Positions 3,001 through 248,000 of a DNA stretch of 248,000 nucleotides are shown piece after piece. Below the pieces are notes generated by a model, which was given only the letters and a program-made list of their open reading frames with translations, did no database searches and was not told where the DNA came from. The position numbers and the translations under genes are program-made. Within the stretch, counting starts at the first letter, position 1. Every line of letters starts with the position of its first letter. The stretch spans positions 189,740,001-189,988,000 of the forward strand of contig OX597815.1 in NCBI GenBank assembly GCA_951406725.2, in the 5' to 3' direction. The stretch comes from Octopus vulgaris. Lineage: Eukaryota.

Positions 3001-6000
3001 TCTTCTCTCAACAATAACTGTATTCAGTCCTCCTCTTAGCCTTGCTATTCATTATTTAACCAACTCATTAATTAAAGAAATGATCAATTAGTTAGTTGGT
3101 TAGATATTTAGCCGAATGACTAACAATAAAGAAGTGATATTGAACCAGTGCATGTGTTTATCATTACTGGTGTAATGACCCTCCCAAGATGCTACAAGAT
3201 TTATTTCAACCCACAGATTCATATGAAGAATCTTGCAAATCAAATAATGTGAACTATATTATTCCTTGTTCAGTTATTAGTAGTGAAAAAAATATTAGTC
3301 ATAAAATTATTCAATTTCATTTTCCACATTCATATAATATGACTTTGCTCAAGAGTACATTCATCAATACGTTTTTTCCCATTAGTTTCCAGTCGCATGT
3401 TTATTAAATCAAAGTTACAATTAATCCAAGATGACAATTAAATTCATATATATATATATATATATATATATATATATAATATGCAATGAAGAAAAAATTT
3501 ATTAGAAAAATTTGAAAAGGCAACAGACCAATAAAATGTTTGCATCAACCACATCTATATCTATATCCATGCATGCATACGTACATACATACAAACATAC
3601 ATACATACATACATACATACATACATACATACAAACATATATACATACATACATACATAACATACATGCACACAAACATACATACATACATACATACATA
3701 CATACATACATACATACATACATACAAAGAAACATACATATATATACACATACACACATTTTTTCCCCATCTATCATGGTGCAGTTCTTCCTTTATTACT
3801 ACTTTATTATTAATTCTTAACTCACCAAAATCAGTGATCACAAATATGAACATGTATATCTGCTTGTGTGTGTTTATGTATATTCATATATATGTATCTA
3901 TCTATCTATCTATCTATCTATCTATCTATCTATCTATCTATCTATCTATCTATCTATCTATCTATCTATCTATCTATCTCTCTCTCTCTCTCTCTCTCTC
4001 TCTCTCTCTATCTCACTCTCTCTCCATATATATATATATCACTCTGTATATATATGTGAAGGTGCATCGCATGGCTCAGTGGTTAGACAGTCGAGCTTAC
4101 AATCATGAGGTTGTGAGTTCAAATCCTGGACCGAACTGTGTGTTTTCTTCTTGAGCAAGACACTTTATTTCATGTTGCTCCAGTGGACTCAGCTGTAGAA
4201 ATGAATTGCAACATCACAGGTGCCAAGCTGTATCAGCCTTTGCCTTTCCTTTGGATAACATCGGTGGTGTGGAGAGGGGAAGCTGGTATGCATGGGTGAC
4301 TGCTAGTCTTCCATAAACAACCTTGCCCGGACCTGTTCCTAGGAGGGTAACTTTCTAGGTGCAATCCCATGGTCAGTCATAACCGAAGGAGGTCTCAGCA
4401 GTACATATATGTATATACACACACACACACATATGTATATATATATATATAAATTAGAAAAAATCACCTTTTATCAATTCAAAATGAAAAATTAAATTAC
4501 ACCATCTAGAAAATTACATATAATAGAAATATTAGATATAAGATTTTAAAAAATATACTGATGATTAAGTAATGTGCAAAATAATCAATAAAACGTATAT
4601 ATTTTATAGAATAACATTATTATACCAAATATATACGCTTTATTTATTATTTTGCGCATTACTTAATCATCAGGATATTTTTTTCATCTTATATTTAATA
4701 TTTCTATTATATGTAATTTTCTAGATGGTGTAATTTAATTTTTCATTTAGAATTGATAAAAGGTAGATTTTTCTAATTTATTTATATATTATATTTTGTG
4801 AAATTTGATTTAGTATTTATAAATTGAATTTTTCCCTGTAAGTTAGGAATAATATTCCCTCAAATTATTATTATTATTATTATTATTAGTATATATATAT
4901 ATATATATATATACATATATATATATTGTTATATTTCAGAATGGTCATTTTGCCAGTTTAGTCATTAAAAATACACGCACTATATATTTGGTGTTACTTT
5001 GCTTCAGTGTTATTTATTTTTTACATTAATCTTAGTCTTATTTCCGCCAGAGTTCTTTCGTCACACTCCTGTGACCGCATCAGTGGTCCTTTGTTTTCTT
5101 CTTTCTTATTTGTGTCTCTCCTTACTAACCGTCAACCATTTTGTATACAAAATACAAAATGGCTTACGGTTAGTAAGGAGAGACACAAATAAGAAAGAAG
5201 AAAACAAAGGACCACTGATGCGGTGCCATTTGTATTTTGTATACAAAATGGTTGACGGTTAGCAAGGAGAGACACAAATAAGAAAGAAGAAAACAAAGGA
5301 CCACTGATGCGGTCACAGGAGTGTGACGAAAGAACTCTGGCCGAAATAAGATTAAGATTAATGTAAAAAATAAATAACACTGAAGCAAAGTAACACCAAA
5401 TATATAGTGCATGTGTTTTTAATGACTAAACTGGCAAAATGACCATTCCGAAATATAACAATATCTGTTTCAACACACGACTTCACATAAAAAATCTTGC
5501 ACAACAAATATATAAACGTACATATATATATACATATATATATATATATATATATATACATACATACATATATATATATATATATATATATATATATATA
5601 TATATATATACATATATATACATACATATATATATACATGTATATACATATAATCAAAATAAGCAACAAGGATATCTAAGGTAGTGTAGTACAATCGTTT
5701 CATGCTACATCATTTTTATTAAACACAGTAAGTATTACATCAGTTTTAAAATGTAGAGCAATCTTCAGCCACACATAGATTTTTTTTAATTAAATGGACA
5801 ATGTACATTTTTATACTTATTTCATTTACCAACATTACAGGTTAATTTCATCATTAAGAATATGGTAGTAGAATGTCCTTGCCCATCTGTAGATTTTTTA
5901 TCATTGAGTTCACTTTGTTATTTAGATCAACCAATGGGAAGGGGGTTTCTTCATTTGTTTCAATAGAGACAAACAAGACATTTTTCTATTTACTCTCTCT

Positions 6001-6439
6001 CTCTTTTACTTGTTTCAGTCATTTGACTGCGGCCATGCTGGAGCACCGCCTTTAGGCAAGCAAATCGACCCCGGGACTTATTCTTTGTAAGCCCAGTACT
6101 TATTCTATCGGTCTCTTTTGCCAAACTGCTAAGTGACGGGATGTAAACACATCAGCATTGGTTGTCAAGCAATGCTAGGGGGACAAACACAGACACACAA
6201 ACACACACACACATATATATACATATATACGACAGGCTTCTTTCAGTTTCTGTCTACCAAATCCACTCACAAGGCATTGGTCGGCCCGGGGCTATAGCAA
6301 AAGATACTTGCCCAAGATTCCACACAGTGGGACTGAACCCGCAACCATGTGGTTGGTTAGCAGAGCAAGCTACTTACCACACAGCCACTCCTGTAGAAAG
6401 AAGAAAGGGTAGTACATATGTCAAAGCCATAAATCCATC

Positions 6440-7330
6440 CTCATTTTGAGGAATTTAACTTAGGCCTATTTGAAAGTATTTTAGCAAAAGTTAGTTGGCT
6501 GAAGCTAGTGGGGTAGGGAGAATAGAGACTACTAATGCTCTAGAGATTTCTAATGTCCCTTACCATTTAACAGCCATAATTTCACTTGTGAATTTTAAAT
6601 AACTATCCTTTAGATAATTTTCCAAAGGATTCCAATAAATTTTAGTACCTTATATAGGGATAGAAAATATAGAGATCATTTCATATTTATCTAAATATAT
6701 ATATATCAATTTCTATTAATATAGATTCACAGTTAGTTAGTAAATAGCGATTTATTTTATTAATAAGTTAAATTAAACAAATATGCTAGACATAATATTT
6801 ACTAACTGTAAAAAAAACCCTTATCAATTAGCACATATATCAAGAGTCTATATGATATATTAAAAAGTAATGGAAGGGAGGTAATCAAGATGGACTAAAT
6901 AATTTCACTAGATATATAGAAGTTTTGCAATCCCATATAAAAGAGTATCAAAATATTCTAATTTCACTTTATTCAAATTTATTTATATTATAAAATTTCT
7001 TAATAATCTATTCAGGTTAAATAAAAGCTAGTATGGTATATAAATTCTTTATTTGGTTACAAAATATTAAGAAAATTTAGGAATGGTCAGAATGCTATTA
7101 TTTAAAATACTTAAAAATACGGGTGGCACAATGTATGCAGGATATCCTAGTTCAAAACGGTTATTCAATAAGTTTATATTATTTGTATCTTTCAAAATTT
7201 CATATGTCTCCATAGAACAAAGTTCACATCCATCCCTACTATTTTTATAGGGCTGTGCCTTTCTTATTATATCCCATTTTAGGTTAAATTCAATATTTTT
7301 TTCTTTCAATTCCCAAATTTTACTGTACAA
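6440..7330 (-). mobile_element. Penelope-like remnant, GIY-YIG C-terminus
   Basis: YSKIWELKEKNIEFNLKWDIIRKAQPY...CELCSMETYEIL...LLNNRFEL. Confidence 0.8.
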
Positions 7331-245800: not shown

Positions 245801-246179
245801 AATGTTGAGAAGGTGAAACATAATCAAGGCTTGCTAGTCTCGCTTCCTTGAAATATATGTAGTTATGCATGGATGGATGGATGGTTGAAGGCTGGGAGAT
245901 ATGGAGGATGCATGTATGTATGTATGTATGTATGTATGTATGTACATATAAATCTATGTGAGAAGGCACATGGCTTAGTGGTTAGGGTATTCAAACTCAT
246001 GATCTTGAGGTCATGAGTTCAACTACCAGCAGTGTGTTGTGTTTTTGAGTAAGACACTTTATTTCATAATACAGTTCTATATATTCAGAGATAAGGAATT
246101 ATGTACATTATTTATATTTGACAGATAATTGTCCTCATCTTGTTAACACAACGTTTCGGCTGAGGACATTACTCAGATC

Positions 246180-247345
246180 ACTGACAGTGGCTCATGGGTG
246201 GATGTTGTCTACCTTGACTTTGCTAAGGCTTTCAACTCTGTGCCACACAAAAGGCTTATGGTGAAACTCTCTGCAATGGGTGTGGGGGATGACCTTTTTA
246301 ACTGGTTGAAATCCTTCATCCTCAGCCGAAAGGAGGTAGTCACAGTTCTAGGACAGCACTCTACACCATATGAGATGTCATCGGGTGTACCACAGGGATC
246401 TGTCCTTGGTCCCCTCCTGTTTGTGGCATACATTAATGACATCGATGCCAATTTAAAGAATGCCACAGTATTGAAATATGCAGACGACATCAAGCTGTAC
246501 CTTGAAATCAAGAGGACTGATCCTGATGTCTACAACTCTTTCCTGCAATCAGACCTAGACACAATGCAGCAATGGATCACAGACTGGCAACTGAAACTGG
246601 CTGTGGACAAGTGTACCACCATGCATTTTGGGAGAAAAAACCCTGCGTCCACATACTCCCTCCACAACACTGATATCAAGAAATCCTCTTGCGAGCGTGA
246701 CCTAGGCATCACTGTCAGCAGTGATTTGCGTTGGACAAAGCATATCTCTAAAATTGTCAAGAAGGCCGAGGGTGTCTTGGCATCACTCAGCAAGACTTTT
246801 GTTAGCTGCTCTCCAGCCATCTATTTAAAACTGTATACAACTATGGTACGACCACACTTGGAATTCGCATCATCAGTTTGGAATCCCTATCTTGCTCAGA
246901 ACATTGACCTCCTGGAATCTGTCCAGAGACGTGCAACCAAACGCATACCCTCCATCAGACACCTACCATATTCTGAGCGCCTTGTTTCCCTGGGCATGGA
247001 TTCACTGAAGCTCCGGCGTCTGGCAACGGACTTGGTAAACGCCCACAAGGTTATCAACCACCTCACCAACAACAACACTGAACACCTTTTTGATCTCCAT
247101 GTGTCTAACACACGTGGACATGCCTACAAAGTCAGAAAACAACACAGCTCCCATGACTTTCGGAAACATTTTTCACGCTCAGGGTTGCTGAAGCGTGGAA
247201 TAAACTGCCTGCGTCAGTTGTTGACTGCCATGACACTGCATCCTTTAAGGCCCTCATGCTTTCCGAAATCCGCCGAAACTACACCTGATTATATATACAC
247301 TTTAGATGAGTTGTAGTGCACCTGAGCACTGTACACAATTATTAT
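246180..247345 (+). mobile_element. 5'-truncated CR1-group LINE (RT and C-terminus), (ATT)n tail
   Basis: VYLDFAKAFNSVPH, SGVPQGSVLGPLLF, YADDIKLY, RPHLEFASSVWNP; 1-nt frameshift near 247168 (the other frame reads FTLRVAEAWNKLP). Confidence 0.93.
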
Positions 247346-248000
247346 GATTATTATTATTATTATTATATACCCTCCAGCCTTCATCAGGTGTCTTGGGGAA
247401 ATTTCAAACCTGGGTTCCCATTCCTAAAGTATTTTTCAATGTTATTATTACCATCATTATTATTATTATTATTATTATTATTATTATTATTATTATTATT
247501 ATTATTATTATTCAGATCACTGCTTGGAATCGAGCTCAGAATCTTGGGGTTATTAGCCCACGTTCTTAACCACTTTGCCATATGCCTGTGGGCATAATAA
247601 TGGAAATAATGTACTTCATTTCATGTTGCTCCAGTCCACTCAGCTGTCAAAAAATGAGTTGTACCTGTAATTGAAAGAACCAGCTTTGTCACATTCTGTA
247701 TCAATGTGAATCCGGGTTCAGTCCCACTACATGGCATCTTGGGCAAGTGTCTTCTACTATAGCCTCAGGCCGACCAAAGCCTTGTGAGTGGATTTGGTAG
247801 ACAGAAACTGAAAGAAGCCGTCATAGTCAGGACGCCATGATCGATCGTTAGATCCTACACGCATTTTTTCTCTCCTTTTTTCTCTCCTTTTTTTCTCTCC
247901 TTGTTTCTCTCCTTGTTTCTTTCTGTGTATCTTTCTGTCGAAGAGGGTAGGCTCAAAATGTAAAAGACTTTTTCTATTTCTATTCCTGAGCGCTATACTA

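Follow-up and report, generated by a model that had tools for sequence, protein, structure and literature searches.

In a stretch of 248,000 nucleotides from the genome of Octopus vulgaris (contig OX597815.1, positions 189,740,001 to 189,988,000), referred to here as the window, minimal type-I hammerhead motifs of the kind carried by Penelope-like elements (PLEs) occur in about a dozen families of short non-coding elements. By their anatomy, these families are very probably either non-autonomous elements related to PLEs or PLE ends that have undergone heavy 5' truncation. The copies in the window are solo, non-autonomous or truncated, since neither a PLE open reading frame (ORF) nor a direct tandem of one family is present, and many of them are decayed. 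They occur alone or in inverted pairs, have diverged by 7-30% and frequently carry core mutations, so that most of them are, as far as the sequences tell, probably inactive relics and not working ribozymes. The original prediction for this stretch had implied that such a diversity of hammerheads is new. Multiple covarying families of minimal hammerheads in a single animal genome were, however, reported in 2014 (Cervera and De la Pena, PMC4209133). The phenomenon itself is therefore already described, and what is new are the cephalopod families, which are added to the known catalogue. The window provides a well-controlled example of an octopus genome that is densely populated by minimal hammerheads of the PLE type.

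Census of hammerhead motifs

The window is eukaryotic, has a G+C content of 35%, and is rich in microsatellites and short interspersed elements (SINEs). It was searched with a descriptor consisting, in this order, of stem I, CTGANGA, a stem II hairpin, GAAA, helix III from A15.1 to U16.1, H17 (not G), and the stem I return. The strict version, for which stems I and II had to reach 4 bp and helix III had to be paired, together with CTGANGA, GAAA and NUH, gave seven matches. The average over 40 dinucleotide-preserving shuffles was 0.025, and the reversed sequence gave none. When stems of at least 3 bp and the exact core (C3-U4-G5-A6-N7-G8-A9, G12-A13-A14, A15.1-U16.1, H17 not G) were demanded, 16-18 loci were obtained, while 0.3-1.5 are expected from dinucleotide shuffles. 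Together with decayed copies recovered by homology, the window contains about 37 hammerhead-derived motifs in about 12 sequence groups. The density is roughly one motif per 7-15 kb. The earlier count of about 25 motifs is thus fair or low, and all seven sites quoted with it were found where they had been placed.

By blastn self-comparison, the approximately 12 groups show no similarity across the motif, with the exception of families G and H, which can be aligned with each other and constitute the sole related pair. The presence of at least six unrelated families, as originally proposed, is supported by these groups, although two of the families counted at that time, those of 82406 (G) and 120447 (H), are relatives. 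If every family is counted once, about 10-12 still remain against the 0.3-1.5 expected.

To avoid the circularity of a pairing descriptor, a second set of sites was collected free of constraints on stems I and II. For these 28 anchors, the only requirements were the two core boxes and full pairing of helix III. Stem I reaches at least 4 bp in 9 of the 28 anchors, but only in 4 of 112 shifted-register controls, in which the 3' strand was shifted. Among the ten anchors with an 8-nt helix III, eight have stems I and II both of at least 3 bp. A covariance model (R1) built from six families recovered sites outside its seed at 121542 (19.7 bits, E 0.016), 181488 (E 0.064) and 28276 (18 bits, E 0.052); families D and H were detected marginally only. 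Relaxed matches at 1838 and 28023 are probably due to chance.

Family A comprises five copies, B and C one each, D about eight, G six, H at least seven and I two, while E and F are each represented by an inverted pair. Further groups are three single sites (102402, 121542 and 135427) and the family of 147852, to which a decayed pair (216.5-216.9 kb) also belongs; 28276-28318 is an additional candidate. The sites of these families apart from D, G and H are listed here, with slashes between the parts in the order of the descriptor.

5684-5774 (-): family A hammerhead, stem I GTGTGG/CTACAC, helix III ACGATTGT; strict descriptor; element with at least 280 nt upstream of the motif, stopping about 35 nt downstream at (TA)n
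57956-58045 (+): family A hammerhead, stem I ATGCAG/CTGCAT, helix III ACGATCGT
95212-95301, approximate (+): family A copy with exact core, helix III ACAATTGT, stems weakened
148389-148484 (-): family A copy, 5' truncation inside stem II, 3' end intact at (TA)n
183580-183721 (-): decayed family A copy, GAAA box deleted
17224-17268 (+): family B, single copy and cleanest minimal hammerhead, CGTATG / CTGATGA / TGGGTC-AA-GACCCA / GAA / ACTGCAGT / C / TGTGCG; strict descriptor; R1 45.5 bits, E 7e-10, but part of the R1 seed; no Rfam match
34321-34404 (-): family C hammerhead, GTTTTGG / CTGACGA / GCTA...TAGC / GAA / ACAATTGT / C / CCAAAAT; (TA)n on both sides; strict descriptor
147425-147689 (both strands): family E head-to-head inverted pair, hammerheads 147446-147523 (-) and 147591-147668 (+); strict descriptor; arms of 121 nt, 99% complementary, spacer of 23 nt, (TA)n at both outer sides
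167718-167994 (both strands): family F head-to-head inverted pair, hammerheads 167782-167825 (-) and 167890-167943 (+), CTGAAGA / A / GGAAT...ATTCC / GAAA; placed between microsatellites, immediately 5' of a long interspersed element (LINE)
181488-181546 (+): family I hammerhead, ATTCCA / CTGATGA / AGGC...GCCA / GAA / ATCCGGGAT / C / TGGAAT; element of about 215 nt with a (TA)n tract on either side; not in the R1 seed
34937-34994 (+): second family I copy, stems decayed
102402-102514 (+): single-copy hammerhead X102, CAC / CTGACGA / CGTGC...GCACG / GAA / ACAATTGT / T / GTG
121542-121599 (-): single-copy hammerhead X121, TCTCTG / CTGATGA / AGGA...TCCC / GAA / ATCAATCGAT / A / CAGAGA
135427-135528 (+): weaker single-copy motif, stem I TCC/GGA (3 bp), stem II AGCTG/CAGCT, 67-nt loop, helix III ACCTGTGT
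147852-147930 (-): hammerhead X147, CCT / CTGAAGA / (T)ATTATGC...GTATAAT(T) / GAA / ACAGCTGT / A / AGG
216524-216857 (both strands): decayed head-to-head inverted pair of the X147 family, 3' half ...GAAACAGCTGTAAG kept in each arm
28276-28318 (-): candidate absent from the original prediction, CCAGA / CTGATGA / weak stem II / GAA / ACTAGT / C / TCTGG; found with R1 and also an anchor-test site

Anatomy of the motifs and predicted dimers

In general, stem I is followed by CUGANGA and, in most cases, by one unpaired A; then come stem II, GAAA, a self-complementary helix III of 4-10 nt and NUH, and the stem I return completes the motif. The CUGANGA architecture claimed for all quoted sites applies to most of them. 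It does not hold at 120447, where the core reads CTGTTGA and the family is characterised by A6U, nor for the consensus of the family of 82406, which is CCGACGA; 135427 is a weaker case because stem I has just 3 bp and helix III is not palindromic. Stem I is open, i.e. without loop 1, and helix III is always loopless, so that it cannot be closed by a single copy. Helix III is ACGT in families D, G and H, the 8-nt palindrome ACNNNNGT in A, B, C, E, X102 and X147, and a near-palindrome of 9-10 nt in family I and X121. Between A9 and stem II, families D, F, G and H contain an unpaired A followed by a G-C pair; an A.C or A.A mismatch is found at this junction in E, X121 and I, and B, C and X102 have no extra A. 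The cleavage triplets, as read from the sequence, are GUC, GUA, GUU, AUC and AUA, and the stem II loops reach 50-80 nt in several families. With these parts the motifs provide the three helices of a type-I hammerhead, helix III being available solely as an intermolecular palindrome.

Stems I and II vary among the groups yet remain paired, in agreement with the earlier proposal. In a loop-trimmed alignment of six families unrelated by blastn, 90.8% of the pair cells are paired, compared to 56% with shuffled 3' partners and 25-47% with slid ones, and two-sided changes are present in 12 of 14 pairs, a count that is partly circular because the sites had been selected by a pairing descriptor. Compensatory changes had also been expected among copies. 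They were detected at two stem I pairs of family A, which differ on both sides between 5684 and 57956, and at one stem I pair that is exchanged from C-G to G-C between families G and H. The change of helix III in family A from ACGATCGT to ACAATTGT was discounted, since both are products of CpG decay that happen to pair.

In ViennaRNA predictions for families E and I, the homodimer of minimum energy is precisely the double hammerhead, with an advantage of 8-12 kcal/mol over two monomers. In the predicted dimers, helix III is intermolecular, stem I is swapped, and stem II forms in cis. For the remaining families tested, an extended duplex competes with the double-hammerhead fold.

The assignment to minimal hammerheads with a palindromic helix III, as known from PLEs, is borne out by the published anatomy (PMC4209133). 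In that study, minimal hammerheads located in the pseudo-long terminal repeats (pLTRs) of PLEs were described as massively dispersed through metazoan genomes, with several consensus families per genome that are rich in covariation. They were mostly found as single motifs, which were ascribed to truncated PLEs, and in some cases as opposite-strand pairs 100-700 bp apart; they were weakly active in vitro, as dimers only. The motifs of the window share with them the type-I topology, the open stem I, and a helix III that is absent or palindromic, so that a dimer is needed for the active fold. Also shared are the unpaired nucleotide between A9 and G10.1 followed by the G10.1-C11.1 pair (D, F, G and H in the window), and the occurrence of several covarying families in one genome, as dispersed single motifs and opposite-strand pairs. 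On the other hand, none of the window motifs resides in a pLTR beside an ORF for reverse transcriptase or a GIY-YIG endonuclease, several families combine an 8-nt helix III palindrome with stem II loops of 50-80 nt, and two families have a U4C or A6U consensus core.

Insertion anatomy

The elements are short (about 130-600 bp), non-coding, and mostly bounded by (TA)n. On the 3' side, 19 of 37 copies have a (TA)6+ tract no more than 200 nt away, compared to 14% of random positions. In family D, the tract is (ATA)n and is found at the hammerhead-sense 5' end. Members of C, G and I are located side by side on both strands of one (TA)n microsatellite region at 34.3-35.2 kb, and the same applies to E, X147, G and A at 147.4-148.5 kb. 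The presence of three to four families in one (TA)n region suggests repeated targeting of the same microsatellite. Five head-to-head inverted pairs were identified, one in E, one in F, two in D, and the pair at 216 kb. Copies of A (148.4 kb), G (30.9 kb) and D (the partner at 157.5 kb) have lost their 5' part and retain the hammerhead-sense 3' end, which indicates that hammerhead-sense RNA was the template of reverse transcription.

Inverted 5'-truncated copies and a bias for microsatellites, notably (TA)n, are traits of PLEs (Craig et al. 2021, PMC8557442), and 5' truncation, inverted copies and microsatellite bias are all shared by the elements of the window. The view of a diversified, retroelement-like population thus gains support from (TA)n targeting, from truncation that spares the 3' end, and from the head-to-head pairs. 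According to these features, the elements were inserted by target-primed reverse transcription of hammerhead-sense RNA, with a preference for (TA)n microsatellites, or (ATA)n in the case of D, and insertion frequently resulted in 5' truncation or in inverted pairs arranged head to head. For cleavage after H17, the palindromes of two copies would have to pair into a double hammerhead, as has been demonstrated in vitro for PLE hammerheads from other sources, and in a master element with tandem copies such cleavage would trim the transcript to unit length.

Families G and H

Two related families deviate from the canonical core in their consensus. The following copies were found.

82280-82591 (-): family G element, about 230 nt, flanked by (TA)n tracts; motif 82406-82440, canonical core only through CpG decay
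147997-148256 (+): family G copy, motif 148094-148128, GTTT / CCGACGA / A / GAGC-TCC-GCTC / GAA / ACGT / T / AGAC (U4C core)
171293-171588 (+): family G copy, motif 171438-171472, core CCGAGGA
34539-34790 (+): family G copy, motif from 34649, core CCGACGA, deletion 3' of helix III
30818-30979 (-): family G copy, motif 30942-30976, 5' truncation immediately before it, 3' end complete at (TA)n
235338-235556 (+): decayed family G copy, motif 235421-235457
120447-120484 (+): family H motif, TCTTT / CTGTTGA / A / GAGC-GTAG-GCTC / GAA / ACGT / T / AAAGA (A6U core)
135900-135937 (-): family H motif, core CTGTCGA
33058-33093 (-): family H motif, core CTGTAGA
43471-43506 (-): family H motif, decayed
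76006-76041 (-): family H motif, decayed
109478-109513 (+): family H motif, core CTGTCGA
247931-247966 (+): family H motif at the window end, where the original prediction also ended

The consensus core of G, CCGACGA (U4C), is present in four of the six copies, and CTGATGA at 82406 can be traced to two CpG-to-TpG changes. All seven copies of family H have a T at position 6 of the core, with CTGTCGA (A6U) as the consensus, and the H motifs are therefore not CUGANGA. The exact core found at 16-18 loci is thus missing from the consensus of both families. Nevertheless, the hammerhead-shaped block is the most conserved part of G and H, with 87% column identity versus 52-63% in the flanks.

A scan of metagenome contigs for the module common to G and H, GAAGAGC-N3-4-GCTCGAAACGT, revealed at least 120 loci, mostly belonging to one eukaryote-like repeat family; some of the 120 matches are chance matches in GC-rich bacterial sequence. 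Two subfamilies, CCGACGA (32 loci) and CTGACGA (29 loci), could be distinguished, each followed by its own downstream sequence. Many of the contigs (loci L002-L121) derive from the sets Ga0126336/37/43, for example L032 with the module at 13808-13829 and L029 with 2811-2832. No PLE-like ORF was seen near the metagenome loci.

U4C is a natural viroid variant with reduced activity in vitro that is sufficient in vivo, according to Perreault et al. 2011 (PMC3088659), who cite Ambros and Flores 1998. A natural C6 core variant has been reported to show low but detectable activity. For A6U, no tolerated precedent was found in the literature. Family G shares the core change with the viroid variant, although its sequence context is that of a retroelement family and not of a viroid. 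There is some chance, albeit a small one, that the fold of G and H is kept for a role other than fast cleavage, such as recognition by a PLE enzyme or dimerisation of template RNA, or that the core variants are active in vivo.

Comparison with retrozymes

Elements that are short (130-600 bp), non-coding, AT-rich and equipped with type-I hammerheads could also be non-LTR retrozymes, i.e. tandem short elements from which hammerheads excise unit-length RNAs that circularise as transposition intermediates. In Metazoa, non-LTR retrozymes are organised as direct tandems with a unit length of 150-450 bp and give rise to circular RNAs; their hammerheads are canonical, with a helix III hairpin and tertiary contacts between loop 1 and loop 2 (Cervera and De la Pena 2020, PMC7229834). 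Animal retrozymes have recently been proposed to be derived from PLE pLTRs, with monomeric copies included among them (Li et al., 2026 preprint, 10.64898/2026.07.22.740005). Defined 5' ends, which are expected of non-autonomous elements, were recognised in families G, D and I. The window elements thus resemble retrozymes in being short, AT-rich, non-coding, non-autonomous carriers of type-I hammerheads, but they differ in other respects. Among about 37 copies in 248 kb, no direct tandem of one family occurs, and arrays of 150-450 bp units with these motifs are missing. Same-strand neighbours less than 1.5 kb apart (147446/147852 and 34649/34937) belong to different families and their helices III are not complementary. 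Neither a helix III hairpin nor loop 1-loop 2 contacts are present. A retrozyme nature of the window families is therefore unlikely.

The only long tandem array of the window, 210803-213147, consists of 10.2 copies of a 230-bp unit that are 98% identical and apparently stem from another SINE-like repeat. It was tested as a retrozyme candidate and rejected, since it carries GAAACGTTAAC but no CUGANGA box and hence no hammerhead.

The original prediction had extended to self-cleaved or circular RNAs. As direct tandems are needed for the excision of unit-length RNAs and for circles, and none occurs, this part finds no support in the window. The same is true for current activity, given the many decayed cores and two families with non-canonical consensus cores.

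Family D

In family D, the direction of retrotransposition had to be considered separately. Its copies are as follows.

108293-108455 (-): family D element, about 165 nt, in the hammerhead sense with (ATA)n on the 5' side and (GTAAATAAT)n on the 3' side
108347-108392 (-): hammerhead of this element, GACAC / CTGATGA / A / GGCTG...CAGCC / GAA / ACGT / T / GTGTT; strict descriptor
157258-157626 (-): family D copy with exact hammerhead at 157312-157357 and an inverted, 5'-truncated partner, head to head, at 157539-157626 (+)
59359-60064 (both strands): head-to-head inverted pair, 59359-59514 (-) and 59673-59793 (+), (ATA)n in between; right copy interrupted by a SINE (59798-59990) and resuming at 59989-60064
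190126-190295 (+): family D copy, G12 changed to A (AAAA instead of GAAA)
219287-219449 (-): family D copy, GGAA at the GAAA box
241999-242161 (+): family D copy, U16.1 changed to C
246074-247450 (-): family D copy with a 5'-truncated LINE fragment inserted at position 116 of the copy (reverse transcriptase ORF 246198-247316 (+), (ATT)n tail)

Read from the opposite strand, the (ATA)n tract, which every D copy has solely at the hammerhead-sense 5' end, is a 3' tail of (ATT)n. Such an (ATT)n tail also ends the LINE fragment at 246198-247316, and the abundant SINE of the window has a (GAT)n tail, so that microsatellite tails appear to be the local style of LINEs and SINEs. Family D, and possibly others, could accordingly be LINE-dependent SINEs that are retrotransposed antisense to the hammerhead, which would then be an inert passenger. 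This is improbable for several reasons. In the hammerhead sense, the partner at 157539-157626 has been truncated at its 5' end but has kept its 3' end. Head-to-head pairs, which are a hallmark of PLEs rather than SINEs, account for two of the approximately eight D loci. The 3' ends of D and the LINE have no sequence in common. Copies that seemed to be 3'-truncated in the hammerhead sense, as expected from antisense retrotransposition, proved to be split by later SINE or LINE insertions, and this interpretation was rejected. In bacterial and archaeal genome contigs, a scan for the family D motif gave no matches.

Probable assignment to Penelope-like elements

Several results weigh against the assignment of the families to PLEs. 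Among 139 ORF pieces of at least 100 amino acids, no GIY-YIG domain was detected, and the pieces include just two reverse transcriptases, both LINE-type (YADD, APE), as well as mariner remnants and a DUF7083 protein. Without a linked gene for reverse transcriptase or endonuclease in the window, the link to PLEs rests on anatomy and literature. The consensus cores of G (U4C) and H (A6U) are non-canonical, and the covariation among families is in part a product of site selection. In family D, the mobilising enzyme is less certain, since the microsatellite lies only at the hammerhead-sense 5' end and on the other strand resembles the local (ATT)n tail of a LINE. Finally, the curated Rfam hammerhead models gave no match at the gathering score in the whole window, and none at E values up to 10 in windows of 200-800 bases round the sites. 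This failure is probably due to the helix III hairpin expected by the models, which the window motifs lack. As the class is missed entirely by the curated models, it is undercounted by standard annotation pipelines. The missing reverse transcriptase or GIY-YIG neighbour does not exclude membership in PLEs, because the published motifs are mostly solo too.

The Rfam result, an AT-rich and repeat-rich genome, and two or three relaxed matches of random appearance (1838, 28023, perhaps 135427), a number consistent with the 1.5 expected, might suggest chance matches to a short degenerate pattern that were inflated through repeat amplification, but the family count, the absence of matches in the reversed sequence, stems that are paired without this being required, and the conserved block in G and H leave a negligible probability for this explanation, which is refuted for the bulk of the sites.

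Other repeats in the window

The two reverse transcriptase ORFs, 163646-165622 (with APE at 165917-167203) and 246198-247316, were inspected as candidates for a PLE ORF and rejected as LINE-type. The first belongs to a near-complete LINE at 163646-167203 (-) with APE endonuclease, reverse transcriptase and a PHD-like finger. Family F was considered as the 5' end of the LINE next to it; this was dismissed because F is a separate inverted pair with microsatellite bounds. The second ORF, 246198-247316 (+), is the 5'-truncated fragment with an (ATT)n tail inside a family D copy, and shows 77% identity to a protein of Octopus sinensis. Round the gene for that protein, repeat families of the window cover 36% of the length of the O. 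sinensis locus with 70-84% identity; no hammerhead was found in this 20-kb locus.

The abundant SINE is about 280 bp long and occurs about once per 5 kb (74 blast segments), for example at 49899-50192, 56290-56532 and 183003-183190 and at about 50 other places. Its 3' tail is (GAT)n, and the copies are truncated at the 5' end to a variable extent. The insertion at 59798-59990 in family D is one of these copies.

Models of miRNAs from plants and animals gave matches at 147.4-147.7 kb that were rejected, since all are below the gathering score and reflect the 121-nt inverted repeat of family E. One of them is MIR7993 with 67.5 bits at a gathering score of 100; long hairpins of this kind can be a source of small RNAs. 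Three ORF pieces match HTH_48 of Mos1/mariner transposases (best E 4e-19) and represent mariner remnants. An ORF of 286 amino acids at 228249-229109 (-) contains DUF7083 (E 6e-15) and is possibly part of another transposable element.

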